Shown: in pieces, positions 1-19,793 of the stretch
Numbering within the stretch: position 1 is the stretch's first letter
Layout: each line of letters opens with the position of its first letter
Assembly: GCA_048013815.1 (NCBI GenBank)
Contig: CM106586.1
Coordinates: 434,001-498,000 of the forward strand
Source of the DNA: Setoptus koraiensis
Lineage: Eukaryota > Animalia > Arthropoda
Direction: 5' to 3'
Length of the DNA: 64,000 nt
Notes under the pieces: generated by a model
The model's input: the letters and a program-made list of their open reading frames with translations, nothing else
Told to the model about the DNA's origin: nothing
Database searches by the model: none
Translations under genes and position numbers: made by a program

Positions 1-928
1 GAACTAAGTATTAACAAGAATAGCTATTTTCTTCTTTGCAAGGATGAATATTCGAATTTTAGAATGTGTGCATATTTATCAACGAAAGAAGATATCGCTA
101 ATCAAGTTAAACTATTCATTTCAGAAAGTCAACTAGCCACAAAGAATAGAGTTCTACAAATATGTACTGATTCAGGAAGTGAGTTTGTTAATAGAAACCT
201 GTCATTATACCTGAAATCTGTTGGAGTAATTCATACACAATCAACACCCTATGTACATCAACAAAATGGATTTATTGAACGTGATGTACGAACCATTGTT
301 GAGAGTGCAAGAACAAATTTAATTAGATCAAATCTTTCGAGAAAATTATGGGACGAGGCCATTGCATGTAGCATTTACACTATGAATCGATCAATCAATA
401 GTAAAAACAAAACAGCAACCCCATACGAATTATGGTTTGGATCAAAGCCATCAGTTTCAAATCTTCACATCTTTGGTGAGGAAGCAGTTGTTCTTGACCA
501 AACTTATAAAACAAAATTTGAACCGCGTGGTCATAAAGTTCGTTTTGTCGGATATACACAGAAATCTAATACATTTAGATTCTTTGATCCGGAGAAGAAC
601 AAAATAATTTGTAGCTGTGACTTCAAGTTCCTCAATACTTATCCAAACTGTTACAACAAAAATGAACACACACAGTCGGATCAATTATTAATCCATGATG
701 ATATAGAGGTCACTCAAGAACATAATGATCTAGCAGATAATTCACAACTTGACGATGACGATTTTCATTCAATTGTTGATAAACCAACAATGGATGTAAT
801 GGAAAATTCATCGGAAAATAATTCTAGTTCTGATCAAATAGGTGCATTGAAACCTACTTCAAGTCTTGGTAAACGTGTTACGTTTAATCTCTCTAAATTC
901 GGTCTTATTAGAGGTAAACAAACAGAAA
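1..928 (+). mobile_element. pol: Ty1/Copia element 1, integrase core (ORF 64-942), cut by a HINE insertion
   Basis: rve motifs CTDSGSEF, QQNGFIER, LWDEAI..SIYTMNRS, TPYELWFG.KP, KFEPRG, FVGY. RT resumes after the gap at 2891, giving Copia order IN-RT-RH. Confidence 0.92.
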
Positions 929-2390
929 ACAAGTTATACTGATTATACCAGTATAAGAGCGCTTAATTTTTCCAGTGAACAATCTTAGAGGTTTGGACAG
1001 TTTATTAAGAAGTGATAAGTGCTAGCTGTCACTAGAAAGTTTTTCAAGAATTTATCCTGGTGAGAACAGTTTCGAAAATTGAACATACTGTGGAAGAACA
1101 TGTGCCACAAAATGGCCTATATCGCCAATACTAGAAACAGAACAGTTTCGAAAATTGCACATAATGTATGGGCACATGTGATCAGAAATCACATGTATTG
1201 AATGAGCTAACATGATCCAGAATTGTCCATAGCGCCAATACTAGAAACAGAAAATTGATAAAACTTGCACAGATCGTGTATGGCACAGTGCTTGCTGTCT
1301 CTAGAAAGTTTCAAGAATTTATCCTGGTGAGAACAGTTTCGAAAATCGCACATAATGTATGGGCACATGTGCCACAATATGGCCTATAGCGCCAATACTA
1401 GAAACAGAAAATTGATAAGACTTGCACAGATCGTGTATGGCACAGTGCTTGCTGTCTCTAGAAAGTTTCAAGAATTTATCCTGGTGAGAACAGTTTCAAA
1501 AATCGCACATAATGTAATACTTGCACAAAATGTTGCGAGCAACATGCACAACACATACACAGAGTATCATCAAAACGGATAGGTGGGAACATGTTCAAAT
1601 ATCACGATATTCACATGTGATCTAGAAATCAGATGTATTGAATGAGTTAACATGATCCAGAATTGCCTATAGCGCCAATACTAGAAACAGAAAATCGATA
1701 AAACTTGCACAGATCGTGTATAGCATCGATCCACCTCTTCACAATACATTAACCTCTGCATGAGCCCGGGACTTAAAATTCAATTCACCTCCCTGAAATG
1801 TGTGTTTGGGAGGTGGACGAACCTTCGAGTCTCAAACTTGTATGTAGGTTGTTGCATGCTCAGGAGGTGAACTTATTGTTTAAGCTCAAGCTAGTCCACC
1901 TCCCAAGCATGAGTCGCCCCACGCTATTTTGAGTAGCTAAACCTATCTCGTTATAGCTTCGGTCCACCTCCTAACTAGACATGAGCCCGAGACTCAAGAT
2001 TCAATCCACCTCCCTAGTAAATGTGTGTTTGGGAGGTGGACGAACTTTCGAATCTCAAGCTTGAGTGTACCTCCCACCTCCCACCTCCCAAGCACATTCC
2101 TGCCTACACACTCACTAAGCACTGATTATGCTAGTGCTAATGTATGCAAGCACACAGCGCGTGACTCTCAAGATCGAAAACTGTGAATATCCACAAATAA
2201 ATCGGTACGTGGATATTCACTGGCATACAAAGTCGGAGTATTCACAAGCACACAGCGCGTGAATCACCATAGCACAATTGGTGAATATCCTATGAAATGC
2301 AAGAATTAAGTATCCACCATCATACCGTGCGTGGATATTCATGCGTGATTTATAGGATCCAACAACACTACATCATAAGCACTTAATTAA
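929..2390 (-). mobile_element. Non-autonomous Helentron/HINE-like element, family A
   Basis: 3' end (reverse complement) ACAAGT-TATACTGATTATACCAGTATA hairpin-GAGCGCTTAATT at 929-970. The 5' end ...CTTAATTAA runs into the gap. Near-identical inverted copy at 54578-56163. Confidence 0.8.
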
Positions 2391-2890
2391 NNNNNNNNNN
2401 NNNNNNNNNNNNNNNNNNNNNNNNNNNNNNNNNNNNNNNNNNNNNNNNNNNNNNNNNNNNNNNNNNNNNNNNNNNNNNNNNNNNNNNNNNNNNNNNNNNN
2501 NNNNNNNNNNNNNNNNNNNNNNNNNNNNNNNNNNNNNNNNNNNNNNNNNNNNNNNNNNNNNNNNNNNNNNNNNNNNNNNNNNNNNNNNNNNNNNNNNNNN
2601 NNNNNNNNNNNNNNNNNNNNNNNNNNNNNNNNNNNNNNNNNNNNNNNNNNNNNNNNNNNNNNNNNNNNNNNNNNNNNNNNNNNNNNNNNNNNNNNNNNNN
2701 NNNNNNNNNNNNNNNNNNNNNNNNNNNNNNNNNNNNNNNNNNNNNNNNNNNNNNNNNNNNNNNNNNNNNNNNNNNNNNNNNNNNNNNNNNNNNNNNNNNN
2801 NNNNNNNNNNNNNNNNNNNNNNNNNNNNNNNNNNNNNNNNNNNNNNNNNNNNNNNNNNNNNNNNNNNNNNNNNNNNNNNNNNNNNNNNNN
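2391..2890. other. Assembly gap (500 N); further 500-N gaps at 24514-25013 and 50143-50642
   Basis: Runs of N. Confidence 1.
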
Positions 2891-2946
2891 CAACTAATTA
2901 TGAAGAAGTTAAACATCGACAGGATGTTGATAAATGGAAAAAGGCG

Positions 2947-5373
2947 ATGAATGAAGAAATAGAATCGATGCACAAAAACAATGTCTGGACACTGGTTGAA
3001 AGACCAGAAGGAGTTAACATTGTTACTAACAAATGGATATTTGTTATTAAAAGAAAGCCAGATGGAAGTATTGATAGATATAAAGCAAGATTAGTTGCTC
3101 GGGGCTTCACACAAATTCAAGGATTTGACTACAATGAAACATATTCTCCAGTAGCATATATGCCATCTATTAGAATGTTGTTTGCTTTCGCATCTGCTCG
3201 AAAACTTAACATTGCTGGATTTGATGTCAAGACAGCATTCTTGAATGGTTATCTAGACGAGAAAATATATATGGAACAACCTGAGGGGTTTAGAGATGAC
3301 TCAGAAAAGGTCTGTTTTTTGAATCGCAGTCTATATGGCCTTAAACAAAGTCCAAGGCAATGGAATATTCGATTTACAAACTTTATAAAATCACTCCGAC
3401 TATCAGAATCTTCAAATGACAAGTGCATCTTCTATCGAAATGATCCAATATTGATTCTTGCAATATATGTTGATGACGGATTATTACTCGCATCAAGTAA
3501 AGAGTCAATTTCTGAAGTTATTGAGAAAATGAAGACCGAGTTCGAAATTCATGAAGTTTCAGTTTCTACGTATTTAGGATTTCAAGTAGAACAATTGAAA
3601 TCAGGTAACATTTTCATACATCAATCGAGTTATATAAACAAAATATTGAAACGATTTAATATGGAAAATTGTAATTCTGTTGATTCTCCAATATCTGACA
3701 ATGTGAGACACATTGAGTTCCAACAACAACTTGACAAAAATATACAGTACAGAGAGGCAGTTGGCTGTCTCTTGTATGCAGCAATTACAACAAGACCTGA
3801 CATAATGTATGCTACCATGAAAGTAAGTTGCAACGTGAGCAATCCTACTGTGCTTGATTGGCTAGCAGTGAAACGTATCTACAGATACCTAAGAGGAAAA
3901 GAGGATTATGGTATATTATATTCAACAACAGAAACACTGCAAGCTTTCTGTGATGCTGATTTTGCAGGTGATACAAAAACAGCTAAATCTACTTCTGGAA
4001 TAATAGTTACAATGTCAGGAGGACCTATTCATTGGCGAAGCCAAAGTCAGAAAATAGTTACTCTTTCCTCTACAGAGGCTGAGCTTGTCAGCCTATGTAC
4101 GGCAGTAAAAGATGTAATTTGGTTAAGAAAATTAGCAACTGAACTCAATATAATCAAAGAAAATCCAACTAGTTTATATTGTGATAATCAGAGCTCAATT
4201 AGACTGGCTCTAAGCGAAACAGTTAGTCAAAGAACACGTCATATGTCTGTAAGGGCTGCTTACCCAAAAGAGCAAGTTACAAACGGTCAAATCAGCATTA
4301 AATATGTAAAAGCAGATGATCAACTAGCTGATGTGCTGACAAAAGCACAAAGTAGCAAAATATTCAAGAAAAACCGAGATAGGATTATATACAAAAAGTT
4401 ATTATTAGCGATGAATATCTTGTTTATGTATTTCTCGACAAACATAATGGCAATTATATTAGAACGTACAGATCCGATTATTTGGCGTCCAACATCGAAG
4501 ATGGTTTATGGAAAGAGGGTTGATTTTAAAGTCATGCTCTTATGGATAAATCCTTGTGACGAATTCAAAAGTCATTCGAACAGTCATCCTCATTGGGAGG
4601 CAAAGCTAAGATGCAATGAGTTATTCCAAAAAGAGTGGGTTGATAATATAGAATCACTGGTTGATTTGTTTCGAGAAATTTCCACTCCACGACAGATAGC
4701 ATTGTTAACTGGACTAACAATTGTTGGTTATCAAATAGTCACAAATTTGATTTCTATAGCAACAAAATATGCACATCCTGACTCCACTACTTCATCGGCA
4801 TATTTAAGTCCAGAACTTCAATCATACAGAACAACACAATCCTCCATGACTGATATTATTTCAAATATGGTTGACAAAATGGGTCTAGTAGATAGTCGCC
4901 TTCATGACCTCAAAGCAGAATATGATAAGAACTGGTATGATTACCATAATCAAGTTTTTGCGATGATAGGAGTTCAGAATGAGATCCTCAAAAAAGGGTT
5001 GAGACTTCAAAATATTCTGAACAAAGCCAATGAGAGACAAGTCTCTATGCCTGATAAAGCTTATCTTATGGATTTTAATAGAACACAGAGATTAAGATTG
5101 TATGATCTTGATATAGATCTATATAGTATTAGGCCTGAATTTACAGAGTTTATATCAGTGAGTAAATTGAAAAATGAAAAAGGTGTTCATCTTCATTTCT
5201 CTGTAATATTGGAGTATCCGGATGCAAAAATTTATCAAGTGGATAGTTTTGATTATTGGAATGTGCTCGAAACACCATTACAATTATTGAAATACACTGG
5301 TAAGCCCTATGTGCTATATGACAAGAAATATAATTGTAGACAGGCACTAGTCGATGAAAAGGCCAACTTAATT
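2947..5373 (+). CDS. pol: Copia 1 RT-RNase H fused in frame to the N-terminal part of an env-like protein
   Basis: KARLVARGF, DVKTAFLNG, LYGLKQSPRQW, YVDD, CDADFA, SSTEAE, ADVLTK. Without a stop it continues into a hydrophobic signal-like stretch (LLLAMNILFMYFSTNIMA) and a Cys-containing ectodomain. Confidence 0.9.
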
Positions 5374-6251
5374 GGGTGTTGTAGCGAATAGTGCCCCAGT
5401 CAGATTTCGATGAAACTTCACACACAGGGCCCGTAGGGCCCAAAAACAATAACCTCGGTGGTCCGGAAGTGCGGAAACTTCCGGTTCCGGTTTTACAAAA
5501 AAAATGAGATACAGGCTTGAAACTCACTATACATGTGAATCAGAGCACGCAGAGTACGATAACGTCAATTTCAAATTTGTCTCACTTCCGGTTGACGAGA
5601 TATCTGGATGAAACCGCTGCAGGGGCGTAGACGGGACGGAATACCCGCGCGCACGAACAAATACGTGCGCTATCAGGCCCATTCTGTTCAACACTTAAGG
5701 ATGCGCAGCTCCTTTTCTGTGCCGGATATATGTTCAGAGCCTTCCATGCGTCCCCATTTCGTTCTTTTTCTATCATTCGTGTATGGATTGCAGTCATGTG
5801 AGCGGAGGGTAGAGGGCGAAGCCCGATACCCGAAGCGCTCATCAACCCTACCCGAAGGGTTCCCGTCGCACGCAGTCGTCGCGGAAGCGACGACGGAGAT
5901 GTGACGGCCTCCAGAATACGAGGCCGCAGGCCGAGTTCTCAGACACACCGCATGTGCAACCCCGAGTGCAGCGAAGCAATAATTTGGTCACTTCCGGTCT
6001 TCTAACCCTAGTAATATCTCTATATCTCGAAAACCGGAAGTTGCACAGAGCTGAAAATTATGTTATTGTGTTCAGCGTAGCTTGAAACGTCTCTGTGGTG
6101 AATTTCAGAGCTCTAGATTCAACTTTATGTAAAACCGGAACCGGAAGTTTCCGCACTTCCGGACCACTTTTCCCGATGGTTCTGGGTCAAGATGAACCCG
6201 TACCTGAAGTTTCATCAAAATCGGGGCGGGGCACTATTCGCTACAACAACC
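5374..6251. mobile_element. Merlin-derived MITE inserted in the Copia 1 env
   Basis: TIRs GGGTGTTGTAGCGAATAGTGCCCC / GGGGCACTATTCGCTACAACAACC; perfect 8-bp TSD ACTTAATT (5366-5373, 6252-6259). Removal restores the frame KANLI-SETCTKQ. Confidence 0.9.
5783..5944 (+). other. Conserved multi-hairpin cassette of about 160 bp (copy 1 of 8; others at 29555, 34975, 36189, 38203, 44701, 48406, 60852)
   Basis: Near-identical sequence in eight MITE/Merlin copies whose surrounding internal DNA differs. Confidence 0.9.
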
Positions 6252-6259
6252 ACTTAATT

Positions 6260-6883
6260 TCCGAGACGTGTACAAAACAAGATTTCATTGACCCTAAATT
6301 GAATGTATGGAAGGAGTCATTGGAATATGCGTTGAACGATTCTATACCACAGGTGAAAATTACCAGACTTTTCAACTACATATATTGCTTTCCGCACAAT
6401 ATAACAATCATGGGACGGCAACAACTTTGCCCATCATCAACTTTCAAGTTACCCGTGGATATAAGCTTTTCTGTACTAGATTTAAAAATTGAAGCTGTCA
6501 CCTTGACGTTAAACATCACAACCAAGGATGTGGTTGTAGATAATCATCATTACAATGAATTCGATACAAATTCACTGAATGAAAGACTACTATTGGACAA
6601 ACAACTGAATTTAACAAAACAAGTCATGCAACTGAAACAGGTGAATAGTGTAATTGAGATTTCACAAAAACGGAAATTATCATGGCTCACTATTATGATG
6701 ATTTTAATTATATATACATTTGCCTTAGCGACATTGGGATGGTTTCTGTTTCGAAAACATTACCACTTCCGAAGAAGTGAAGATATATCGTTACATGCAT
6801 TTCCTCCGTGTCAATCGTGTATCGAACGTAATCGATACATAAGACATTGCCGTAATGAAAATATCGATAATGATATACCTTAG
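6260..6883 (+). CDS. env: Copia 1 env-like protein, C-terminal part with transmembrane helix
   Basis: YCFPHNITI..CP..TFKL motif and TM WLTIMMILIIYTFALATLGWFLF; in frame with 2947-5373 once the MITE is removed. Confidence 0.8.
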   Translation, partial: SETCTKQDFIDPKLNVWKESLEYALNDSIPQVKITRLFNYIYCFPHNITIMGRQQLCPSSTFKLPVDISFSVLDLKIEAVTLTLNITTKDVVVDNHHYNEFDTNSLNERLLLDKQLNLTKQVMQLKQVNSVIEISQKRKLSWLTIMMILIIYTFALATLGWFLFRKHYHFRRSEDISLHAFPPCQSCIERNRYIRHCRNENIDNDIP

Positions 6884-6930
6884 TTGATAATTGTAGTTGA
6901 AGGTTGAGAGATTATGACTTGAGGGGAGCA

Positions 6931-7228
6931 TGTTGAAATATCAAGTCATAACATTGTATCGTATGAATGACATAATCATTCATACGAGACTATGTTATGA
7001 AATAGTCTCGTATAAATGACATAATCATTCATACGTAAATATTATCGATATTGTCATCACAGTCTCGTATGAATGCAATTGATAAACAATCAATAAATTG
7101 CATTCATACGAGACCAGGTCGATCGTTTGGTATAAATACCACCAACAATTGTGTCATAAATAATAGTTTGAAATAAAGGATTAAAACTACAAAGTTAAGT
7201 TTAGTTCAAATTCGAATTATTGTTCACA
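6931..7228 (+). repeat. Copia 1 LTR (TGTTGAA...TTCACA), preceded by a PPT
   Basis: Polypurine tract GAGGGGAGCA at 6921-6930, TG...CA ends, TATAAATA about 7131, AATAAA about 7172, PBS immediately after. Confidence 0.8.
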
Positions 7229-10200
7229 TGGTGTCAGAAGTGGGGTTCGAACCCACGCCCTCATTCGAGGAGCGTGATTCGCTGGAGCGCCACCCAGTGG
7301 CAGCTAACATAGACGCTCCGGGGGAGCGCCAACTACAAATAATCAGAAACGCACATGTTTTGAAACAGCGCCACCCAGTGTCGATCATCACACACGCTCC
7401 GGCGGAGCGCCAACTACAAATAATCAGAGAAATACATGATTCGCTGGAGCGCCACCCAGTGGCAGCTAACATAGACGCTCCGGGGGAGCGCCAACTACAA
7501 ATAATCAGAAACGCACATGTTTTGAAACAGCGCCACCCAGTGTCGGCCAACGCACACGCTCCGGCAGAGCGCCAACTACAAATAATCAGAGAAATACATG
7601 ATTCGCTGGAGCGCCACCCAGTGGCAGCTAACATAGACGCTCCGGGGGAGCGCCAACTACAAATAATCAGAAACGCACATGTTTTGAAACAGCGCCACCC
7701 AGTGTCGATCAACACACACGCTCGGTGCAACTATATTGCCAACGTAATACGGCGTCAAAAAGTCTGGCTTGCTGCTCATAAAGAAAATAACAAAACGGAG
7801 AAAGTTGGCGACTCTATTCTTATTAGTATTCTATACACCAATGTACTTTATTGTTCTGGAATACAACTACAAGCGCGGGATAATTCTACATTCTTATATG
7901 GAACAGTCTTTGAAATGTTTTACATACGCATCTATATCATCAAACGCCCGGTCACCATTGCAATTGCAATAGAACTCTCCAGGATATACATTCTCACTGC
8001 AAAAAAGGTCAAGGTGACCCGGACTATACTCTGGAACAAACACGGATTGCTTACATATACAAGCTCTTACGCAATGATCAAATGTAAAACAAGACGGGAA
8101 CGCCACTGGGAAGCGTTCCATGGCGCTCTTGCTTGGCTGTACATTTATCAAATAAGCAAGCATAAACAGATCACAAATTACTCCAAAGCCAAAATGATCT
8201 TGTATCGGCTTGCAATATCTACCACACAACTCCAAGGAAGCAGTTCTCACGAAGTCGAACCTCCTTTTTACAACAGCAAGAGGCTTATTGTAACTCAATA
8301 TTCTCTCCCTGATTCCTTGAAAATCAGCAACCAAGGCCTCAAAAGTAACATATTGATTACCCAACTGACGGCAGGCCATAGGGCGATAGGTTGTGATCAC
8401 CCGGTTATCGTCAGGACACATGAAACTGAAGCTGTTACCATTGATATACAGAATTCGCTTCTTAGACGGAACCAGCATAAGCAACGAACCATCAGGGCCA
8501 GAGGTGAAGGTTATATCGATGGATTTGTTTCGGCTATCCAGTGTTGGTCCAGATGGGTCTACTGTAAAAGATGGGACATAGATATCCTGCTTCTTCTTGT
8601 CTTTAAGCATCATAGCATATTTGTTTGCTACACTCATAGCATGGCTGATCCAAAAGATAATCGCCTCTCCTACATCGCAACCAAAACCTCCTCTGTTAGG
8701 ATAGAATCGCAATTCCGGGACTTCACAGCCAGCCATGTTATCAGATACGTAGACAGCAAAATCTTCGACAGTTGCGTAGTCACGTATAACAAAAGAGGGC
8801 TGCTTAAAAGGCTTATAATAGTTCCTGGTCCTAGCCGAAGTTCGCCGGGCTTCCGAAACTGCTGCGGTGAAAGTGGTGTTAAGCGAGTCAGAAAGAATAC
8901 AAGGGATATTTCCCAAGTCCCGGGCATCAAAAGAAGGTGGTGGAACCTGGCCAGGTGCTCCATCCACCTCAATGGAACTGGTGACCACATCTCCTTCAAA
9001 AAGAGTGAGGAGCTCCTGCGAAACCTCAAGCTCAATCAACTCTTGACGAGTGAAACCGGCGTAGTGGCGACATTGAGCGCTGGTGACTTCTTCAATGAAA
9101 TAGTTTGTGGTCGCAACATTAGCAGTGGTTGGAAGATAATAAAGCCTAAAACCATCCAAAATTTCGTAAGTGGCAACAGGAAAGGAATAAAGTGCAGAGG
9201 CCAAGCATCTCCATGGAGCATCGTTACATCCCAAGGCAAGCAAATATGCGTGACGTCCAAACATGGGGTTATCAAAGCTATGTCCTGGTCCGAAATGGTA
9301 ACGATTTTTAAAATGGCCAATAAGCTCCTCGGTAATAGATGCTGGGAAGGCAAATCCACGATGGCAGGTATAAAACACTATGCTAATTACAGGTCTAAGC
9401 GGATCCTTGGAAGCCATAATGGCACAGAAAAAATGGCCGTTGTACACTATTGGTTGAATAATTATAGAATGGGTGTCCGTAATAACGACAGGATCGATGG
9501 TGGCTCGCACTCCAAGAGTAATCAATGGCTGAACCATTACAGATTCAAATCCTTGCGAGGCAAAATAACTGGACATGGAACTCACTATAGCATCGGAAGA
9601 GGACTCAGTGTCGATGCAATATGTTGGGTTAGTTCGATCTCGTGGATCATCGCTGGACGTGAGTCGCTGTGGATGAAATCGGACAAAATGCTGAAGAGGA
9701 TGTACCACGGTAGACGGTACTTTGCCTCGGCTGAAGTCATAAAAATTGCGACGAAAGTATGTATTCTTATACTCTTCGGGAGTAGACTCGTCCTCCGCCA
9801 AATTAGCATAATCGGCGCTTTTCCACTTGATTACGGATTCGGAAACGATGGTGAAAATATCTCTAGTCGGGCAGGCTCTGCGGATGTGCCGAGTAATAGC
9901 TTCCATTATTGTTCCAAGAGAGAAAATATCATCAAGAACATCGGCAGTGTTGCACTTAGATGGCGAAGCACTGGGGTCCATCTGCCTGAAGTCCGACCGA
10001 ACATGTATGAAACACCACTTGACAAATCGATAAGAATTCTCCGATGCGGTTTGCAGATTAATAAGACCAGGAATCATCCACCGTGGCAAAGAGATCTGAT
10101 TTTGAAGGGAAAAAATATTCACGCCCTGCAATATGGTGTCCTCAGTTTCCTCTCCGCCATAATTAAGGATACTCTGATGGTTGGTCTTGTAAGAAATCTT

Positions 10201-13200
10201 ATGCTCTCCATAATAGGCTGCAACAATAAAAGTATCCGGAATCGGGATGTGTGGGTTGGACAATATAAAACAAAGACAATCATAATTTCTTGTAAACGCC
10301 TCAGGTATCCTCTTTCCAAACGCTGTAGGAGGCATAAATCGAATACGACGGGAACCAGATATATTGAATGTTCGATGCACATAGTCGTTGAAATAAGCGG
10401 CGATGGAATAGAATTCAGCAGGCCCAATATAATGATAAGGAGGAGGCAAAACATCTGGATCTTCTTTCGCGACAAGATACTCCTGCTGGAAATGTTTCTT
10501 GACGGTCCTTTTTGGCTTTTGATTATTCTCCTCGTCGGACATTGCAGTTGTGATATTTCAGAGATGATAAATAATATAGAATTGGCTGATGAATATGCTG
10601 GATGTTGGCTTAGGATAAATATGCCGGGTTGGGCTGGCGATGAATATTCTGGGTTGCAATTTGGACCTCAGACCAACAAGACCGACACGAGGGAGCGCGA
10701 AATACAATTAATCAGAACAAGACATGTCGAGAAACAACGCCATCATGTGGACACCAACACACACACTCCGGCGGAGCGCCAACTACAAATAATCAGAAAC
10801 GCAAATGTTTTGAAACAGCGCCACCAAGTGGCAGCTAACACACACGCTCCGGCGGAGCGCCAACTACAAATAATCAGAAACGCACATGTTCTGAAACAGC
10901 GCCACCCAGTGGCAGCTAACACACACGCTCCGGCGGAGCGCCAACTACAAACAATCAGAGAAACACATGATTCGCTGGAGCGCCACCCAGTGGCAGCTAA
11001 CATAGACGCTCCGGCGGAGCGCCAACTACAAATAATCAGAAACGCACATGTTTTGAAACAGCGCCACCCAGTGGCAGCTAACACACACGCTCCGGCGGAG
11101 CGCCAACTACAAATAAACAGAAACGCACATGTTCTGAAACAGCGCCACCCAGTGGCAGCTAACATAGACGCTCCGGGGGAGCGCCAACTACAAATAATCA
11201 GAAACGCACATGTTTTGAAACAGCGCCACCCAGTGGCAGCTAACATAGACGCTCCGGGGGAGCGCCAACTACAAATAATCAGAAACGCACATGTTTTGAA
11301 ACAGCGCCACCCAGTGGCAGCTAACACACACGCTCCGGCGGAGCGCCAACTACAAACAATCGGACCCATACCAATTAACATATATAGACACGCGCCAACC
11401 AAAAACTGGTTACGATATGGGTCAATAAGCATCCACCATGGCAACATTCGCTTCATCCAAGCGAACTGTAATAAATCGGCATATGGCAACTCAACCTTAC
11501 TGGATGCAGCAAAAAATAGAAAATGTGATATCATATTAGCCAGCGAAGTCCACACCTCAGCGAGTGGGGTCATCACCGGCTTTCACAGCAGTATTAATAA
11601 TAGAGAGATAATTACTTCGAAAAACGGATATAAACGATGGAAAAAGAGGGCTCAAGCGGTCCTACAGAATCATCTAACACAAAGCAGAAAGAACAAAGAA
11701 TCAAAATGGTGGACTGCTAGACTTAGTCAGTTGAGAACAACTTACAAACAGGCTGCTAGAGCTTTCTACACAGTTGCTCATCAAAACAACGATGAGGTGA
11801 AGATGAATATGGCGAAAGCTCGCAACCTCTATGCTAAGGAAATAAGGATTGCAAAAAGACAATCATGGACCTCATTCGTAGCCCTAAGTTCAAGCATCGA
11901 CGCTTGGAGTGAAGCATACAAGATCATTATGAACAAACGAAAGTTCAAAACATGTATGCAAGCTCTCAAGTTAGACAATGGACAAGAAATCACAGAACCG
12001 TCTTCCATACTTGAGAAGTTCATGGACTCGTTCTTTCCCCAAGATGATCCGCAAACAGACACGGATGAGCAAAAGGAAATCAGGAATGCGAAAAATGATA
12101 GGTACTGGAGCGAATTTCCAAACATAGTAACGAATCAAACAGAAATTGAAACGCTCATAAAAGGCCTTCCCTATAACAAAGCGCCTGGCATGGATGGACT
12201 AACAGGTGAAATACTGAGAGGGATCTCTGCCAAAGTTTCCAAGTATCTCACGCTCATCATCGACAGTTGTCTCAAAACAGGGTACTTCCCACAAACTTGG
12301 AAAGAGGCATATGTAGTCATGATTCCAAAACCAGGAAAGAATGCCGCGACCTTGAAAGGCTGGAGACCTATATGCCTTTTGAACAATATGTCTAAGATTC
12401 TAGATAAAATTATGATAAACAACATCATGATGCAGTTCAGACAAACAACAGGAATTTCACAGGAACAATACGGGTTTGAACCACACAAGTCAACTGTTCA
12501 TGCTGTTAACGAACTAGTTGACACCATCAAAACGAAACGTAAGGAAGGAGTGGTAGCATTAGTATGCTTGGATGTCTCCGGAGCGTTCGATAACGCGTGG
12601 CATCCAGAGATCATCAGCAGACTCAAAGATGCACACATAAGCCACAATCTACTAGAACTACTCAAATCCTACCTAGAAAATAGGAAAGCGACATTAGAAT
12701 ATAATGGGATCACTGCGATAAAACACCCACAAAGAGGATGCCCGCAAGGGTCATCGTCGGGACCAATGTTATGGAACTTGCTATACAACAGCATCATCTC
12801 AATCTCCAACGAGAACAGTGACACAAGAATAATAGCATATGCTGACGATATAACCCTAGTAACCTGGGCACGCACACAGGAACTATTGAGAACTAAAACG
12901 GAAAGAGCAGTTGGACACATAATAAAGCAGGGAAATAAGATCAAACTTAGCTTTGGTCCTGAAAAAACAGAATTACTGTATTACCAACAAGTCCGAGCAG
13001 GCAGTATCCCAGAAATATGCAATCACGACACCCCAGATATAGCTCAATCATTGGCAAATAGACGCCCTCGAATGAAAAATAGCGGTAAAAGGAACGACTT
13101 CACGATAAGGGTAGATAACTACTCTATTCGCGAAGCAAAAACGGCGAGAATACTTGGGGTCTATTTCAACAATCTACTCACATGGACAGATCACATTGAG

Positions 13201-14628
13201 ATTGCTCTCAAAAAGGCAACACAAAAATGGCAGCTGCTCGCTCCTGCATGCAGCAACAAATGGGGATTAAACCCCAGAAGTGCTATCCGCATTTTCGAGG
13301 GGGCAATACAACCAGTATTAACATACGCGTCACCTGTATGGGCGGAGGAGCTGAGATTCGCCAAGACACGAAACATACTAATTAAATGGCAGGAAAGTAA
13401 AGTCACCAGACTATGCAGAGGGTATACAACTATTGCGAAATCCATAGTAAACATCATAAGTGGAATAATGCCTGTCGACTTGTTGATCGAAGGACAAGCC
13501 ATTCAATGGAACACAAACAACATACACGAATACACGTACACATACAAAGGGGACACGGTATCGAACTCCTCAGTGATTGGGAAATGCAAGATAAAAGTCG
13601 AAGCACCAGATATCCACGAGACTGAAAATATACCGGCACACCCGAGCTACTACATCAGAAAGAACAACAAAAGGTCTAGACGCGGTTATGATACCGTTGC
13701 AAAAGAGATCAAAAACGATATAGAACATCATTATATAAGAAGCCGAGAGGATAACGAATATCTATATGCATATCACCTGGACTTGATGACAGGAAGTGAA
13801 ATAAGAACATATAGACTCAAAAAGTATCCCAATTGGAAAGCAAACAGAGTCACCATGCTACTCATAGCGACCGAACACATTATACAGGATGCTAGGAGAA
13901 GGAGACTGCTTCAAAACGACAAGACCTTTCACTTCATCTACTACGAAAATGACATCGGAACAGAATTAAAGAATTTGATTTCAGTTGACCTGGTCAATCA
14001 AGAGTCAGCAAGCGTGATTAGGAAGTACTGGGCCAACAGAAAATATATTAAGTTGCTCGAAATCAAGCAAGGAGACGTATGGCCGGTTGAAGATATCTCA
14101 ACATTTGACATAGACTGCTATAGAGTCAAGGACCACAAACCCAAGATCAAGTTATGGATGCTTGACAAATGGAATGACAGATACATGTCAGAGTCATCAA
14201 AACCAGACTGCTGGGGCAAACACACTCGCCGCATATTTGAGACCGTGTTCGAACGAAAGAAGTGGATATGGGTAACACCTGGCTACAAGATGACTCAGAT
14301 TATGACGAACCACGGGTATTTTAATTATATATTAAACAAATTTGATAAGGCACCATACCCATACTGCGAAAGATGCGCCAGCATCAACATCAGAGCAATT
14401 GATAATGCACATCACTATGTCCTAGAGTGTTCCACATATTCCGAACAAAGGTCAGAGCTAATTAACTATGTTAACCTCAGAGGAATAGGATCGTTAAGAG
14501 GTATAATAGGAGACCGCACAGCCTACTACATGCTCAAAAAATTCATTCATGGTAACAACAAACTGGACAATGTACAAAACACAAGAACCAGAATGGTGCC
14601 AATAATAGACAATAATGAGCATAGCTGA
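7228..14628 (+). CDS. 2466-aa ORF: repeats, antisense-overlapped region, APE remnant, R1-like reverse transcriptase, CCHC knuckle
   Basis: RT motifs KAPGMDG, WKEAYVVMIPKPGK, RPICLL, QYGF, LDVSGAFDN, GCPQGS..GP.LWN, YADD, LGV; C-terminal HGYF..CERC..HYVLEC. N-terminal APE motifs only (IQANCNKS, DIILASEV). Confidence 0.9.
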   Translation: MVSEVGFEPTPSFEERDSLERHPVAANIDAPGERQLQIIRNAHVLKQRHPVSIITHAPAERQLQIIREIHDSLERHPVAANIDAPGERQLQIIRNAHVLKQRHPVSANAHAPAERQLQIIREIHDSLERHPVAANIDAPGERQLQIIRNAHVLKQRHPVSINTHARCNYIANVIRRQKVWLAAHKENNKTEKVGDSILISILYTNVLYCSGIQLQARDNSTFLYGTVFEMFYIRIYIIKRPVTIAIAIELSRIYILTAKKVKVTRTILWNKHGLLTYTSSYAMIKCKTRRERHWEAFHGALAWLYIYQISKHKQITNYSKAKMILYRLAISTTQLQGSSSHEVEPPFYNSKRLIVTQYSLPDSLKISNQGLKSNILITQLTAGHRAIGCDHPVIVRTHETEAVTIDIQNSLLRRNQHKQRTIRARGEGYIDGFVSAIQCWSRWVYCKRWDIDILLLLVFKHHSIFVCYTHSMADPKDNRLSYIATKTSSVRIESQFRDFTASHVIRYVDSKIFDSCVVTYNKRGLLKRLIIVPGPSRSSPGFRNCCGESGVKRVRKNTRDISQVPGIKRRWWNLARCSIHLNGTGDHISFKKSEELLRNLKLNQLLTSETGVVATLSAGDFFNEIVCGRNISSGWKIIKPKTIQNFVSGNRKGIKCRGQASPWSIVTSQGKQICVTSKHGVIKAMSWSEMVTIFKMANKLLGNRCWEGKSTMAGIKHYANYRSKRILGSHNGTEKMAVVHYWLNNYRMGVRNNDRIDGGSHSKSNQWLNHYRFKSLRGKITGHGTHYSIGRGLSVDAICWVSSISWIIAGRESLWMKSDKMLKRMYHGRRYFASAEVIKIATKVCILILFGSRLVLRQISIIGAFPLDYGFGNDGENISSRAGSADVPSNSFHYCSKRENIIKNIGSVALRWRSTGVHLPEVRPNMYETPLDKSIRILRCGLQINKTRNHPPWQRDLILKGKNIHALQYGVLSFLSAIIKDTLMVGLVRNLMLSIIGCNNKSIRNRDVWVGQYKTKTIIISCKRLRYPLSKRCRRHKSNTTGTRYIECSMHIVVEISGDGIEFSRPNIMIRRRQNIWIFFRDKILLLEMFLDGPFWLLIILLVGHCSCDISEMINNIELADEYAGCWLRINMPGWAGDEYSGLQFGPQTNKTDTREREIQLIRTRHVEKQRHHVDTNTHTPAERQLQIIRNANVLKQRHQVAANTHAPAERQLQIIRNAHVLKQRHPVAANTHAPAERQLQTIRETHDSLERHPVAANIDAPAERQLQIIRNAHVLKQRHPVAANTHAPAERQLQINRNAHVLKQRHPVAANIDAPGERQLQIIRNAHVLKQRHPVAANIDAPGERQLQIIRNAHVLKQRHPVAANTHAPAERQLQTIGPIPINIYRHAPTKNWLRYGSISIHHGNIRFIQANCNKSAYGNSTLLDAAKNRKCDIILASEVHTSASGVITGFHSSINNREIITSKNGYKRWKKRAQAVLQNHLTQSRKNKESKWWTARLSQLRTTYKQAARAFYTVAHQNNDEVKMNMAKARNLYAKEIRIAKRQSWTSFVALSSSIDAWSEAYKIIMNKRKFKTCMQALKLDNGQEITEPSSILEKFMDSFFPQDDPQTDTDEQKEIRNAKNDRYWSEFPNIVTNQTEIETLIKGLPYNKAPGMDGLTGEILRGISAKVSKYLTLIIDSCLKTGYFPQTWKEAYVVMIPKPGKNAATLKGWRPICLLNNMSKILDKIMINNIMMQFRQTTGISQEQYGFEPHKSTVHAVNELVDTIKTKRKEGVVALVCLDVSGAFDNAWHPEIISRLKDAHISHNLLELLKSYLENRKATLEYNGITAIKHPQRGCPQGSSSGPMLWNLLYNSIISISNENSDTRIIAYADDITLVTWARTQELLRTKTERAVGHIIKQGNKIKLSFGPEKTELLYYQQVRAGSIPEICNHDTPDIAQSLANRRPRMKNSGKRNDFTIRVDNYSIREAKTARILGVYFNNLLTWTDHIEIALKKATQKWQLLAPACSNKWGLNPRSAIRIFEGAIQPVLTYASPVWAEELRFAKTRNILIKWQESKVTRLCRGYTTIAKSIVNIISGIMPVDLLIEGQAIQWNTNNIHEYTYTYKGDTVSNSSVIGKCKIKVEAPDIHETENIPAHPSYYIRKNNKRSRRGYDTVAKEIKNDIEHHYIRSREDNEYLYAYHLDLMTGSEIRTYRLKKYPNWKANRVTMLLIATEHIIQDARRRRLLQNDKTFHFIYYENDIGTELKNLISVDLVNQESASVIRKYWANRKYIKLLEIKQGDVWPVEDISTFDIDCYRVKDHKPKIKLWMLDKWNDRYMSESSKPDCWGKHTRRIFETVFERKKWIWVTPGYKMTQIMTNHGYFNYILNKFDKAPYPYCERCASINIRAIDNAHHYVLECSTYSEQRSELINYVNLRGIGSLRGIIGDRTAYYMLKKFIHGNNKLDNVQNTRTRMVPIIDNNEHS
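7229..7271 (-). tRNA. 43-nt copy of the 3' half of a mature tRNA-Leu (variable arm, T-arm, acceptor, CCA): extended PBS, not a tRNA gene
   Basis: Reverse complement TCCTCGAATGAGGGCGTGGGTTCGAACCCCACTTCTGACACCA matches the eukaryotic tRNA-Leu (CAA/CAG-type) 3' end and includes the CCA. Confidence 0.85.
7275..7722 (+). repeat. 81-nt tandem repeat block 1 (about 5.5 units)
   Basis: 27-aa period HVLKQRHPVAANTHAPAERQLQIIRNA; each unit holds the hairpin ACGCTCCGG(C/G)GGAGCG. Confidence 0.95.
7894..10542 (-). CDS. 882-aa antisense protein of unknown function (possible tandem Ulp1/CE-clan-like domains plus a C-terminal Zn finger)
   Basis: Intact ATG-to-stop ORF with globular-protein composition; motifs IIIQPIVYNGHFFCAIM, ELCGRYC, YCNC..F..HFKDC. 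Confidence 0.75.
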   Translation of the reverse strand: MSDEENNQKPKRTVKKHFQQEYLVAKEDPDVLPPPYHYIGPAEFYSIAAYFNDYVHRTFNISGSRRIRFMPPTAFGKRIPEAFTRNYDCLCFILSNPHIPIPDTFIVAAYYGEHKISYKTNHQSILNYGGEETEDTILQGVNIFSLQNQISLPRWMIPGLINLQTASENSYRFVKWCFIHVRSDFRQMDPSASPSKCNTADVLDDIFSLGTIMEAITRHIRRACPTRDIFTIVSESVIKWKSADYANLAEDESTPEEYKNTYFRRNFYDFSRGKVPSTVVHPLQHFVRFHPQRLTSSDDPRDRTNPTYCIDTESSSDAIVSSMSSYFASQGFESVMVQPLITLGVRATIDPVVITDTHSIIIQPIVYNGHFFCAIMASKDPLRPVISIVFYTCHRGFAFPASITEELIGHFKNRYHFGPGHSFDNPMFGRHAYLLALGCNDAPWRCLASALYSFPVATYEILDGFRLYYLPTTANVATTNYFIEEVTSAQCRHYAGFTRQELIELEVSQELLTLFEGDVVTSSIEVDGAPGQVPPPSFDARDLGNIPCILSDSLNTTFTAAVSEARRTSARTRNYYKPFKQPSFVIRDYATVEDFAVYVSDNMAGCEVPELRFYPNRGGFGCDVGEAIIFWISHAMSVANKYAMMLKDKKKQDIYVPSFTVDPSGPTLDSRNKSIDITFTSGPDGSLLMLVPSKKRILYINGNSFSFMCPDDNRVITTYRPMACRQLGNQYVTFEALVADFQGIRERILSYNKPLAVVKRRFDFVRTASLELCGRYCKPIQDHFGFGVICDLFMLAYLINVQPSKSAMERFPVAFPSCFTFDHCVRACICKQSVFVPEYSPGHLDLFCSENVYPGEFYCNCNGDRAFDDIDAYVKHFKDCSI
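10740..11358 (+). repeat. 81-nt tandem repeat block 2 (about 7.5 units), same family as block 1
   Basis: Same unit sequence as 7275-7722. Confidence 0.95.
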
Positions 14629-14684
14629 ATGTAGAACCATCAACGGATGCATAGACACTAAAATGTCTTACTCAGAAACTTACA

Positions 14685-15180
14685 TGCACGCTGCCACTGA
14701 GCGTAGGCACTACACGATCAAACTTGAAACAAACACACATAGATATAGACGCTCCCACGGAGCGCACAGTGGTACATACGCAATACGAAATAGAGAACAG
14801 GGCGTAATAATACACGCTCTCACGGAGCGTACGGCAGTGCAAGCATATTTCCACCATATACACATACGAACATGCACGCTGCCAAGGAGCACATGCAATA
14901 CATGACCAAAACTTGCAACAACTCACACTGACATATACGCTCCCACGGAGCGCTTAGCAGAACATACGCAAGATCAGATGGAGAATAGAACATAATAGGA
15001 CACGCTCCCACGGAGCGCACGGCAGTGAATATACGATTACATCATGAACACACACGAACATGTACGTTCAAACTTGGAACAACCAAACATGGATAGATAC
15101 GCTCGCATGGAGCGCTCAAAGGCACATGTGATACCATAAGGAGAACATGGCGCAATCAGACACGCTCCCAAGGAATGCGT
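14685..15180 (+). repeat. Degenerate 3' UTR repeat array, mostly 60-65-nt spacing, around an ACGCTCCCACGGAGCG hairpin
   Basis: Eight hairpin copies at about 14688, 14748, 14814, 14876, 14937, 15002, 15098, 15161. Confidence 0.8.
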
Positions 15181-15251
15181 GGCAGTACACATACGAGTTA
15201 AAGTTTTGAAGATATTAGGTGATACAACAATCAGATAACAAATAATAAAAT

Positions 15252-15468
15252 GAGGTCATCAGACCTCGAAAGAAGAGTGAGCAGCAGTGCGGGCAACTGC
15301 TCACTTGTTTACCTTCCCGCCAGGATCATATAGCGACGACGTCGCTTCAATCATGATCCGGATTCTATTTTGTAATATAATAATCTGTAAGAATAGAATA
15401 AATAAAGGCCAATAAAAAAAAAAAAAAAAACCAACCAACCAACCAACCAGCCATCCAACCAACCAACT
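15252..15468 (+). terminator. Non-LTR 3' end: structured UTR, AATAAA, poly(A) 15414-15430, then (CCAA)n
   Basis: Stems GAGGTC/GACCTC, AGTGAGCAG/CTGCTCACT, GGATCAT/ATGATCC; AATAAA at 15401; A17 tail. Confidence 0.8.
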
Positions 15469-16790: not shown

Positions 16791-19700
16791 CTAAGAGTCG
16801 TCCTCGACTTCTTGTTCGCATTTACTATCAATTGGTGCGGTGCTGGTGGTGAGCGCGTGTCTAGATTTATATTTTCGTACGCCAACCCAAGCCAGATAGG
16901 TTGCTATGCCCAGAGTAATCGCAGCAAACAGGACTTGCTGTGTTATGATCAGTGTTCCGATCACCATGTTCTCCTGTGCCTCCCACGCATGAGTGAGTTC
17001 ATCCAAATTCATTGGAGGGCTGAATTTGAACTTAACCAGTTCTACGAGTTCCCTTAACGGGGCGAGGTCTTCCTTAAGGTGAATTTGGCCGAATTCGTAG
17101 GTATGCCCCTCTATTATCACCGGCACGTTAATACCTAACTTGAATGGCTTCGTTGGACACGCGTAAGTTTGATTGTAGATGGATATTTTGTATGGGAAAC
17201 AGTAAACCACAATGCCATCGATATCTGGATAAACTTGTATTACGTCGCTAGGTGTTAGTTTCTCCCTGGCAATTTTCTTAGTGATCCGCCATTGATTTTC
17301 TTGTATTAAATTATCTATGCAGTTAGTGTGTGGGGATAGGTAGGCCATATCTCCATTTATCTCTAAGCCACCGTCGTGTGTAAGAATGGCGCACTTCTTT
17401 TCTGTATTAAATACAAATGTCCTAGGGCCGTTATACTCGATGATATCGTAATAAGAACCGTTTTCCCTGACTATCAGGAACGGTTTTACCTTCATAATCT
17501 TAAGTTTCTTGCTCATTAGGTTAATCGTGAACTCTAGCTCCGCCTGGCTCCTTAGTTCGTCTAATTTGCAGCTTATCGGCTTCCCCGAATTAAGCAGGCA
17601 TTCTCCTGAGCAATAGCTGTTGAGTGGAATAATGCTAAAAATTTGGGGATTGAGTATATCTCTCTGCCAATCTCTCCCGATTGATTCGAGCGAGAGTTTG
17701 AGCGTAGTCAGCCGCGCTATTGCGCTGGCGGTTTTCATTGTGGCGTCCGTATTGTAGTCAATATAACGGAACAGTGTTTGATTCACTTGATCGATTTTGA
17801 CTGCCAGATGTTTTAGTGAATTATCTTGTTCTGCCGCTGATGTTGTTAAATTTTTCATCAGTCCCTTAAGTACTTCCACTTCATTGGTGGCTGCGTTTTG
17901 TGCGGCGTCGATGGAATTAAATTTGACCTCATTTCTAATAGTCGTCGCCACCGTACCAAGAAAGCTCACCGCGAGACTGCCCATTACGAAGGCTGGTGCG
18001 AGTAGTAGCGGGACAATCCGTTTGTGCCGCAGATGTACATCATGTAAGACTGGAGACCTTTTCGAAATTTTGTGTTTGGTAGCGTAGTGTTCATTTAGTA
18101 GGTCTCGCATTTTTTCCACCAGTGGATCACCCTTTTTGACCATTAGTTTGTTGAATTCTTCTCTAATGCTGGCTAAGTCGTGGCTTTTGCTCTGGCGATT
18201 AATTGAAAGCTTGTCGGTAGTTTTGCCCCTTTGTATCTTGCAAAAACTGCGTAGCGGAATCTTCAGGTCCTCCTCGATTATCTGGTAGCAGAAATCTACG
18301 CTTCGTTCAATCGCTTCCTTGTTCCCCATCATCGAATCAGCTGATGTTTCACATGGGTTATCATAGTTGAGCACGACCACTGCTCGTTGATAACCCGTAA
18401 TTACGTTTTCTCCTGTCGGGCTGAATGTGACAAAATTTGTTAGAGTGAATGGGCCCTCCGCTATCACTCCTAACAGTGAAAGGAGGAGTATGATCACCTG
18501 CAGGATGTAGCCCAAATTTCCATACGTAAGTGTTTGTGGGCGAGTTCTTATCCTCCCCGATCTTCTAGGAGTCATAGGGATCACTAAATTAGGGTTGGGT
18601 GCCGGAGTGTTTATAAGAGGAGTCGAATATGTCTCACTATCTGAGCTCTCCTCTTCAGAAGTGTCCAGGTGGGCTTCGTCATTTTGTGCTATCACATCGG
18701 AAGCGGCGTCGTAATCTCCAGAAGGGGAATCGTTAACTAGCTCCGTTGCGTCCGAATCTTCCTCGGTTTGCTCTTTCGATCTGTTTGGAATGGTTCTTTC
18801 GATGAGGTGGAGTTCCTCTTCGGAATCGTCGCTTAGGATTAACTCCTGTGATAGGTCTGCGTTTTGCGAGGTGCTCGGAACCTCTGCATTTGCCTGTGTC
18901 GCTCCGCCTGTGTCTTCTGGGGAGGTCATATTCGCCGTGTCTTGCTGAGAAATTTTTGTTTCGAAGATATGTCGTTCATGGAATTTCTTGATTCTTGATA
19001 CATGGACTGTGTCCCGTTTTGTCTTCCGCAAACCGACGCTCTCTACCTCATAGACGAGTGGGGATAATTGTCTTATAATTTTGAAGGGGCCTTTCCAACG
19101 ATGCAATAGTTCAGTCGATAAACCTATTTTACGGACAGGAGCAGAGACAAGCACCAGTTCATCGGGCTTGAATGTTGCTGTTCGCTTGTTTTTATCGTAG
19201 TTCAATTTTTGCTTATTCGAGGCTCTACGGTTATTCTGCTCCACTATTTCTCGCGCCTTCTCCATGAATCTGACCGTGTTTTGTATATATTGATCATGTT
19301 CCGCGATTCCAGTGGTTCTTATAGCGTAATTTAAGTCAAACGGTAGGACCAAATCCCTAGCATATACCAAGAAAGATGGTGCGAACCCAGTTGACTCGTG
19401 AACTGAAGTATTATAGGCCAACGTCAGGAATGGCAGGCTCATGTCCCAGTCGTCCTGGCGAAAATTAGTCTGTTTCGAGATCATCGTTGCGAATGTTTCA
19501 TTTGCCCGTTCCGTCAGGCCGTTGCATTGAGGATGGTATGACGTCGTTTTCAAATGTTTCGTCGATACCAGGGTGTAAATATCTTCCGCCAAGCGCGAGC
19601 AGAAGTTCGACCCTCTATCCGACAACAAACGAGACGGACTACCATGTCTACACACTATGTTGTCGATAAAAAATCTCGCGGTGTCCCAGGTAGTGGCTTT

Positions 19701-19793
19701 AGGCATCGCTTTGCATTCTACGTACTTAGTAAAATAGTCCGTAGCCAGGATTGTCCACTTGTTTTTACTGGAGGATTCCTTGAAAGGGCCCAT
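16791..19793 (-). CDS. env: Gypsy integrase core and GPY/F fused in frame to an env-like class I fusion glycoprotein
   Basis: SDRGSNF, HPQCNGLTER, WKGPF; internal signal peptide YILQVIILLLSLLGVIAEG; furin site RHKR before the hydrophobic IVPLLLAPAFVMG; C-terminal TM. Confidence 0.85.
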   Translation of the reverse strand: MGPFKESSSKNKWTILATDYFTKYVECKAMPKATTWDTARFFIDNIVCRHGSPSRLLSDRGSNFCSRLAEDIYTLVSTKHLKTTSYHPQCNGLTERANETFATMISKQTNFRQDDWDMSLPFLTLAYNTSVHESTGFAPSFLVYARDLVLPFDLNYAIRTTGIAEHDQYIQNTVRFMEKAREIVEQNNRRASNKQKLNYDKNKRTATFKPDELVLVSAPVRKIGLSTELLHRWKGPFKIIRQLSPLVYEVESVGLRKTKRDTVHVSRIKKFHERHIFETKISQQDTANMTSPEDTGGATQANAEVPSTSQNADLSQELILSDDSEEELHLIERTIPNRSKEQTEEDSDATELVNDSPSGDYDAASDVIAQNDEAHLDTSEEESSDSETYSTPLINTPAPNPNLVIPMTPRRSGRIRTRPQTLTYGNLGYILQVIILLLSLLGVIAEGPFTLTNFVTFSPTGENVITGYQRAVVVLNYDNPCETSADSMMGNKEAIERSVDFCYQIIEEDLKIPLRSFCKIQRGKTTDKLSINRQSKSHDLASIREEFNKLMVKKGDPLVEKMRDLLNEHYATKHKISKRSPVLHDVHLRHKRIVPLLLAPAFVMGSLAVSFLGTVATTIRNEVKFNSIDAAQNAATNEVEVLKGLMKNLTTSAAEQDNSLKHLAVKIDQVNQTLFRYIDYNTDATMKTASAIARLTTLKLSLESIGRDWQRDILNPQIFSIIPLNSYCSGECLLNSGKPISCKLDELRSQAELEFTINLMSKKLKIMKVKPFLIVRENGSYYDIIEYNGPRTFVFNTEKKCAILTHDGGLEINGDMAYLSPHTNCIDNLIQENQWRITKKIAREKLTPSDVIQVYPDIDGIVVYCFPYKISIYNQTYACPTKPFKLGINVPVIIEGHTYEFGQIHLKEDLAPLRELVELVKFKFSPPMNLDELTHAWEAQENMVIGTLIITQQVLFAAITLGIATYLAWVGVRKYKSRHALTTSTAPIDSKCEQEVEDDS

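Follow-up and report, generated by a model that had tools for sequence, protein, structure and literature searches.

A telomere-repeat LINE of Setoptus koraiensis with a narnavirus-like coding layout: a conserved antisense gene codon-aligned with a stop-free sense frame

We analysed a 64,000-nt stretch of the Setoptus koraiensis genome (hereafter the window; assembly GCA_048013815.1, 48.7 Mb; contig CM106586.1, positions 434,001-498,000, forward strand), which carries an 8.2-kb long interspersed nuclear element (LINE) with a narnavirus-like coding layout. The + frame of this element is free of stop codons from 7177 to 14628, and its first ATG, at 7228, opens an open reading frame (ORF) of 2466 aa (7228-14628). 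This ORF traverses two repeat arrays, an antisense gene, the remnant of an endonuclease, a reverse transcriptase (RT) and a C-terminal CCHC motif. The antisense gene (the cargo; 882 aa, 7894-10542 on the - strand) lies wholly inside the + ORF and shares its triplet boundaries exactly. The features of the element are as follows.

7177..14628, +: element-sense open frame (ORF listing; RVT_1 match, E 2e-32)
7228..7272, +: non-native 5' junction, the end of an upstream long terminal repeat (LTR)-type element followed by a tRNA 3'-end complement; supplies the ATG
7286..7723: left array of 81-bp (27-codon) tandem repeats, 5.4 copies as assembled, open in the sense frame
7725..7893, +: flank from the left array to the antisense stop codon, 0 in-frame stops
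7894..10542, -: antisense gene, 882 codons plus stop
10543..10740, +: flank from the antisense start codon to the right array, 0 in-frame + stops
10692..11361: right array, the 81-bp repeat of the left array in the same orientation, 8.3 copies as assembled, open in the sense frame
11365..11604, +: N-terminal remnant of an apurinic/apyrimidinic (AP)-type endonuclease (APE), 73 aa
12322..13011, +: RT domain, Pfam RVT_1, ORF aa 1699-1928
14365..14430, +: C-terminal Cys/His motif of the + ORF, presumably of the kind known from ORF2 ends of APE-type LINEs
14629..15413, +: 3' untranslated region (UTR) with 188-nt repeats (14682-15066)
15414..15467, +: poly(A) (15414-15430), then directly about 10 (CCAA)n telomere repeat units

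Over 7894-10542 the aligned + frame contains no stop codon, and the other two + frames contain 50 and 71. The same holds for the two flanks (0 stops in the aligned + frame, 1-6 in each other + frame), and both repeat arrays are stop-free in the aligned + frame only. Accordingly, the stop-complement codons TTA, CTA and TCA (hereafter forbidden codons) are absent from the - ORF, which uses 53 Leu and 71 Ser codons. The expected number was 38.7 when the window's other transposon ORFs served as the null (log10 P of none = -20.6), about 43 with the element's own ORF2, and 33.4 with the frequency of third-position A in the cargo's other codon families (30% in four-fold families, 41% in purine two-fold families; log10 P = -17.6). 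Zero was thus observed against 33-43 expected, with P about 1e-18 to 1e-23 over the three nulls. A genome-wide rarity of these codons was ruled out, as they make up about 5% of codons in the window's other ORFs and further ORFs of the same elements use them as well. Contigs of three public runs carry the structure unbroken over 7680-10795, covering the antisense gene and its junctions, which rules out a mis-assembled chimera for that interval. Neither repeat array is spanned by single contigs, and the copy numbers of 5.4 and 8.3 are as assembled. A first-pass annotation, made from the letters and an ORF list, had described the 2466-codon stop-free + ORF, the codon-aligned - ORF inside it, the missing codons, the open flanks and a non-LTR RT; the ORF listing, translations, codon counts and RVT_1 match bear all of these out. 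Its AT-rich setting did not hold up, since the region has a G+C content of 40-45% and is hence not strongly AT-rich.

The strand under protein-level selection could be read from both polymorphism and divergence. Contigs of the public runs contain 15 read variants inside the - ORF, of which 10 fall at codon position 3, four at position 2 and one at position 1. All ten position-3 variants are silent for the - protein and all alter the residue of the + frame. Synonymous variants therefore number 10 in the - frame and one in the + frame (14/15 change the sense residue), and none of the 15 creates a stop in either frame. Between homologues compared on the same codon alignment, identity was 0.64, 0.58 and 0.41 in the cargo frame and 0.35, 0.34 and 0.24 in the sense frame, with differences at cargo codon position 3 (0.57) exceeding those at positions 1 and 2 (0.22-0.32). 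Sense-frame identity between homologues (0.17-0.35) was close to that measured against a control that is not ambigrammatic, i.e. not open in both directions (0.14), and mean sense-frame substitution scores were near zero at larger distances. Together, the variants and the divergence place the - protein under purifying selection, and it alone is under amino-acid selection. On these sequence comparisons, the sense frame over the antisense gene is a bridge that carries no protein-level constraint and is selected only for openness. The annotation's view of the - translation as a real protein and of the + translation as non-protein is therefore sustained.

This arrangement was not confined to the window. 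The 882-aa protein is encoded by a single copy in the assembly, plus distant paralogues (L002/L003/L013, L005, L006, L007, L009), each of which lies in a codon-aligned open frame of the opposite strand. A word-index search returned two homologues of the protein and a profile search of 1.84 billion representative proteins returned 12, marking the family as rare. The double-open frame also occurs in contigs of four other public runs (L010, L011, L037, L035, L039, L040) with a G+C content of 41-54%. The aligned reverse frame has no stop over the full 3012 nt of L010 (39% identity), none in 3297 nt of L037 and one in 3359 nt of L011 (58-63% identity), so that the element-borne copies lack the frequent sense-frame stops by which the first-pass annotation's reading could have been overturned. 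In L035 (G+C 54%), the cargo frame is open for 1408 aa within an aligned opposite frame of 1784 aa, followed by an endonuclease ORF. In L039, whose RT is 58% identical to that of the window, two cargo halves lie beneath a 748-aa bridge ORF that precedes an APE-RT ORF2. The more distant L040 (RT 29% identical, G+C 52%) has a 696-aa cargo homologue (hhalign E 1e-45 against the family profile) beneath a 1055-aa bridge ORF, again before ORF2. Within the Setoptus koraiensis genome, L013 has the same order of bridge over cargo, endonuclease and RT. In all four (L013, L035, L039, L040), APE and/or RT lie downstream on the strand opposite to the cargo.

The aligned double-open frame was kept in every element-borne relative examined, down to 22% protein identity and in several species. 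Nine cargo ORFs contain 0-2 forbidden codons each, in comparison to 3-6% of codons in the ORF2s of the same elements. One homologue (L036, positions 4555-7002 of a Logan contig from a public run) lies outside any aligned open frame, and there 64/816 codons (7.8%) are of the forbidden type. L036 thus serves as a natural control, limiting the codon ban to genes beneath a LINE sense frame, and the claim that selection holds the + frame open is borne out across the element-borne relatives. Near the N-terminus of L036, serine is encoded by a long tract of TCA, and no Pfam domain was found in the adjacent ORFs; L036 may be a gene of the host, or the cargo may derive from it. On these comparisons, the antisense gene is a long-standing part of the LINE lineage, not a one-off cargo.

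A further relative (C2:922721-937054), seemingly intact, has a single sense ORF of 4778 codons with APE and RT. Its first ~1314 sense codons overlie a 1335-codon antisense ORF (C2:922658-926662), whose one forbidden codon is located outside the overlap. The longest double-open stretch we met (C2:940269-948000; L032 2269-9999) has a + ORF of 1875 codons (C2:940941-946565) codon-aligned in a - frame open for at least 2577 codons; neither frame has a Pfam domain, and no RT was found in the part examined. The 1335-aa and 1875-aa antisense proteins match the cargo family only weakly (shared GH motif, hhalign probability 15-29%). At C2:348346-366820 (L012-L014), two copies of a related ambigrammatic LINE form an inverted, head-to-head pair; ~870 bp separate their antisense genes, and the right copy has a tandem-repeat insertion between APE and RT. 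The closest RT relative in the genome (75% identity, C2:378362-382865) begins within 81-bp repeats beside a Gypsy element and is uninformative about cargo.

We examined what the antisense gene might encode by structure prediction. An AlphaFold2 model built on a 15-sequence alignment had a mean predicted local distance difference test (pLDDT) score of 58.8, with local values of 70-90 in two domains and a less confidently modelled C-terminal region. In an exhaustive structural search of 48,161 chains, the best 25 matches were all CE-clan enzymes (Z 5.1-8.5), covering residues 33-241 or 306-468. These included SseL, SENPs, XopD, NEDP1, ChlaDUB, CidB, African swine fever virus pS273R, poxvirus I7L and YopJ-type proteins. 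The top Foldseek matches were also CE-clan, but weak (E 0.05). The antisense protein is thus predicted to fold as a tandem CE-clan (Ulp1/SENP-like) cysteine protease homologue with two CE-like domains. Among 10 sequences, H370 and C439 of domain 2 were present in 10/10 and H394 in 9/10, with no conserved acidic residue assigned, and domain 1 had no conserved Cys. The C-terminus carries an invariant C-x-C...H...C motif. Pfam searches (E 0.01) gave no match for the cargo, the bridge translations or the other antisense proteins, and an ESM Atlas feature search with the antisense protein gave no usable match.

The element that carries this gene probably belongs to an R1-like type of LINE. One hundred forty-two LINE ORF2 homologues carry APE and RT domains, and the nearest named relatives of the RT are spider proteins labelled 'type-1 retrotransposable element R1', the R1 placement coming from automatic names at ~28% identity alone. 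The 3' end of the element is a 17-nt poly(A) followed immediately by the (CCAA) units, and two relatives in the Setoptus koraiensis genome share this layout (poly(A) or a plain 3' end, then (CCAA)n). Read contigs also contain 5'-truncated copies that abut the telomere repeat at element positions 8459 (X2/X3) and 8757 (X1). The X2/X3 contig from 8459 is ~7 times deeper than the preceding part and has a 1-nt deletion at 9685; in X2/X3, truncated decaying copies seem to outnumber long ones. The presence of (CCAA)n at both 3' ends and truncated 5' ends identifies a LINE specific for telomere repeats, one that takes (CCAA)n as its target and enters it in a fixed orientation. A ~10-kb (~9.7 kb) (CCAA)n array ends ~5 kb before the window start and ~12 kb before the element, whose 5' end faces it. 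It forms part of C2:415000-429000 (L041, L042), where ~3.7 kb of (TTGG)n, a 500-N gap and ~9.7 kb of (CCAA)n follow one another. These are two chromosome-end arrays placed head to head through scaffolding, and the window just beyond them is therefore subtelomeric. The rest of the window is dense in Copia-type and Gypsy-type ORFs (64-5391, 16791-22999, 30187-31909 and 56150-57584) and has 500-N scaffold gaps at 2391-2890, 24514-25013 and 50143-50642.

The window copy itself is defective, with its endonuclease deleted in frame and a non-native 5' end. The 73-aa endonuclease remnant is 77% identical to an intact relative and ends at a deletion breakpoint at 11597/11605, where all three public runs contain a form with 1045 letters in place of 7. 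The net difference is +1038 nt, or 346 codons, and the deletion is hence in frame. AP-endonuclease domains are present in L013, L033, L035, L039, L040 and the C2:922721 relative, and the domain is not intact in the window copy. At the other end, the ATG at 7228 lies within a junction where the end of the upstream LTR-type element meets the tRNA 3'-end complement and where contigs branch (7231/7232 and 7241), with Copia-type ORFs upstream. As it lies in a foreign junction, this ATG is not the native start of the element. Along 7180-7272, the end of an LTR-type element gives way to ~43 nt complementary to a tRNA's 3' portion (with the CCA), after which the LINE array follows. The tRNA-complementary stretch exceeds the usual primer-binding site, and a tRNA scan of the window found none. 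Such a junction points to template switching or to a faulty product of reverse transcription.

Arrays of one and the same 81-bp repeat border the antisense gene to its left and right, and L039 has 102- and 165-nt repeats at the corresponding places. Repeat periods in translated parts are thus multiples of three (81, 102 and 165), in contrast to the 188-nt period of the 3' UTR repeat. Each 81-bp unit of both arrays (7314-7652 and 10845-11345) contains one CGCTCC-N3-GGAGCG hairpin with a GGG or GGC loop. The 188-nt repeats of the 3' UTR hold three further copies of this stem (14750-15017), there with a CAC loop, and an analogous hairpin motif is seen in the L039 repeats. The hairpin might serve the element's RT as a recognition site or act as a promoter module.

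How the bridge is joined to ORF2 was most apparent in the relatives. In the window copy and in the relative with 4778 codons, the bridge is fused in frame to ORF2. ORF1 of L040, which contains two CCHC knuckles (and a weak coiled-coil Pfam match, E 0.012, below the cut-off), is linked to the bridge ORF by an ATGA stop/start overlap, and the ATG of ORF2 lies 19 nt before the bridge stop. The corresponding distance in L035 is 5 nt. A gag-like ORF1 with CCHC knuckles is absent from the 5'-incomplete window copy and was not found in the C2:922721 relative. On the antisense side, the only AATAAA of the - strand in the whole element (TTTATT, 7847-7852) lies ~45 nt past the antisense stop codon.

These observations led us to the following model. 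Ribosomes entering the sense RNA at its 5' end or at ORF1 would reach ORF2 only through the bridge, either in one fused frame, as in the window copy, or by stop/start coupling at short overlaps, as in the relatives. A stop within the bridge would leave ORF2 behind kilobases of AUG-rich leader and may open the sense RNA to nonsense-mediated decay. Openness is achieved by banning TTA, CTA and TCA from the antisense gene, which in the aligned register incurs a synonymous cost only. A second RNA, transcribed from the antisense strand, would serve to make the protease homologue; it would probably start near or in the right array, with 10543..10740 as the presumed promoter and leader, and end at the sole antisense AATAAA just past the stop codon. 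That ORF1, bridge and ORF2 are joined by overlapping stop/start codons in relatives fits the reason already put forward in the first-pass annotation, namely that ribosomes cross the cargo to arrive at the RT. On balance we think it probable that the window holds a defective telomere-repeat LINE with a conserved antisense CE-clan gene, and that its sense bridge is kept open for the translation of ORF2.

Several points weigh against this. No RNA run contains the element sequence, and transcription of either strand, translation of the bridge and an antisense promoter are unobserved. In L013 and L039, ~140 nt separate the bridge stop from the first ORF2 ATG, showing that tight coupling is not universal. 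A fused bridge places more than 1000 residues of unselected polypeptide before the enzyme, and no 2A-like ribosome-skipping motif was found in the sense ORFs. The native arrangement is not visible in the window copy, given its 5' junction with another element and its deleted endonuclease. As for the cargo, the structure model is moderately confident only (mean pLDDT 58.8), Pfam models (Peptidase_C48 or a relative) do not recognise the protein, and the third catalytic residue is not clear from conservation in domain 2.

The main competing explanation, which we judge rather unlikely, is that the sense frame is kept open for the RNA itself, with ribosome traffic averting decay or antisense pairing and RNA interference. 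It resembles a proposal made for the narnavirus reverse ORF and would suit the narnavirus-like signature found here (aligned register, an unconstrained open reverse frame and clade-wide conservation). An element with an antisense gene necessarily produces complementary RNAs, and the loose ORF junctions of L013 and L039 fit RNA protection as well as they fit coupling. However, protection alone gives no account of a bridge that always ends at or runs into ORF2, by overlap or fusion. The two explanations also overlap, as both require the bridge to be translated.

Dual coding, in which the sense polypeptide over the antisense gene would itself be functional (for example as a disordered RNA-binding or spacer domain), is less credible still. 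The stretch does form part of very long ORFs (2466 aa in the window, 4778 aa in the C2:922721 relative) and has a higher content of Lys, Arg and Ile than the protein of the cargo. Nevertheless, 14 of the 15 variants alter its residues, its identity between homologues barely departs from the control level with substitution scores near zero at distance, and its translations have no Pfam domain. We rejected a third possibility, that an endogenous ambigrammatic narna-like RNA virus was captured by a LINE RT and its double-open frame inherited, as highly improbable. Its size (~2.6 kb) and register are narnavirus-like, and two homologue contigs are ~3 kb long, but the predicted fold is that of a CE-clan protease and not a polymerase, the position of the gene with respect to APE and RT stays the same among diverged LINEs from several species, a free, non-ambigrammatic homologue exists (L036), and the homologue contigs end in LINE-like repeats. 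Chance, general codon bias or an assembly chimera can be set aside almost entirely: long antisense ORFs do sometimes arise randomly, but P was about 1e-18 or lower under three nulls, about nine independent ORFs show the avoidance, forbidden codons do occur in further ORFs of these elements and of the window, and contigs of three runs bridge the antisense gene and both junctions.

Ambigrammatic narnaviruses (e.g. Culex narnavirus 1; PMC6884476, PMC8316113, PMC8155312) offer the closest comparison, sharing a kilobase-scale aligned (-0) reverse frame that avoids UUA, CUA and UCA, conservation of this stop-free frame across a clade, and one frame without protein-level constraint. In narnaviruses, only the codon-aligned register permits purely synonymous removal of stops (PMC6884476), and this argument applies to the LINE unchanged. 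Where narnaviruses are RNA replicons, the carrier here is DNA, as part of a LINE of an animal genome; selection acts on a CE-clan protease homologue instead of an RNA-dependent RNA polymerase; and the unconstrained frame is the element's sense frame, leading into an enzyme ORF. Across these elements the aligned overlap measures 2.6-5.6 kb, and the arrangement is conserved with the RT across species. In the literature searched, we found the term 'ambigrammatic' tied to narnaviruses and a few other viruses, with no retrotransposon link, and for antisense ORFs in LINEs we found only L1 cases.

Among telomere-repeat LINEs, TRAS1 and SART1 of Bombyx mori likewise have APE and RT in ORF2, a poly(A) joined to the telomere repeat in one orientation, a CCHC gag-like ORF1 (here in L040), and ORFs linked by overlapping stop/start codons. 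The C-rich target-strand orientation of the window element is that of TRAS1. The present element differs from both in its 4-nt target repeat, (CCAA)n, and in the 2-4 kb antisense gene and stop-free bridge that precede ORF2, flanked by in-frame tandem arrays. TART of Drosophila is also a telomere-associated LINE, with repeats near both ends and prominent antisense transcription, and neither a stop-free overlap nor a long antisense gene for a protein is known to us in it; the Drosophila telomeric elements attach to chromosome ends, not into telomerase repeats. For SART1, translation of ORF2 through stop/start coupling at a UAAUG overlap has been reported (PMC3894237).

Antisense ORFs overlapping sense coding sequence are also known from mammalian L1 and from primate L1 ORF0. 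The ~1-kb antisense ORFs over ORF1 of some mammalian L1 elements have no known domain (Ivancevic et al. 2016, PMC5203782). They are shorter than the gene described here, lack any recognised domain or fold, and lie over an ORF1 that is itself functional. In the present elements it is the antisense gene that is selected and that also has a homologue away from such an overlap, and the sense frame rides along as passenger. CE-clan protease domains of unknown role are likewise found in other mobile elements, as Ulp1-like proteases are encoded in sense by Utopia/NeSL LINEs (PMC4640811) and Ginger DNA transposons (PMC2836005). There, the protease is a domain of a sense polyprotein, in contrast to the separate antisense gene with two CE-like domains, undetected by Pfam, in the present elements.

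Opposite-strand stop-free overlaps have so far been treated as a narnavirus curiosity whose purpose is debated. The present case is interpretable: the selected protein can be identified, the unselected frame leads to a known enzyme ORF, and the L036 control shows that the codon ban is specific. These three features make the ribosome-transit hypothesis testable with DNA constructs. For annotation, the elements carry a warning that giant ORFs (2,500-4,800 codons) in such genomes can be mostly non-protein bridges. They also show that the antisense strand of a LINE can harbour a gene over long periods, and add a telomere-repeat-specific LINE for a 4-nt telomere motif. More tentatively, and leaning slightly towards doubt, we propose that a whole animal LINE lineage could be ambigrammatic. 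A conserved CE-clan gene, possibly deSUMOylase-like, would lie in antisense between ORF1 and ORF2, and the sense frame would stay open because only ribosomes that cross this gene could translate ORF2. If true, this would be, to our knowledge, the first case known outside narnaviruses and the first on DNA. It would provide a genetically tractable system for asking why ambigrams exist, and would point to a factor encoded on the opposite strand of a LINE that may counteract host silencing at telomeres.

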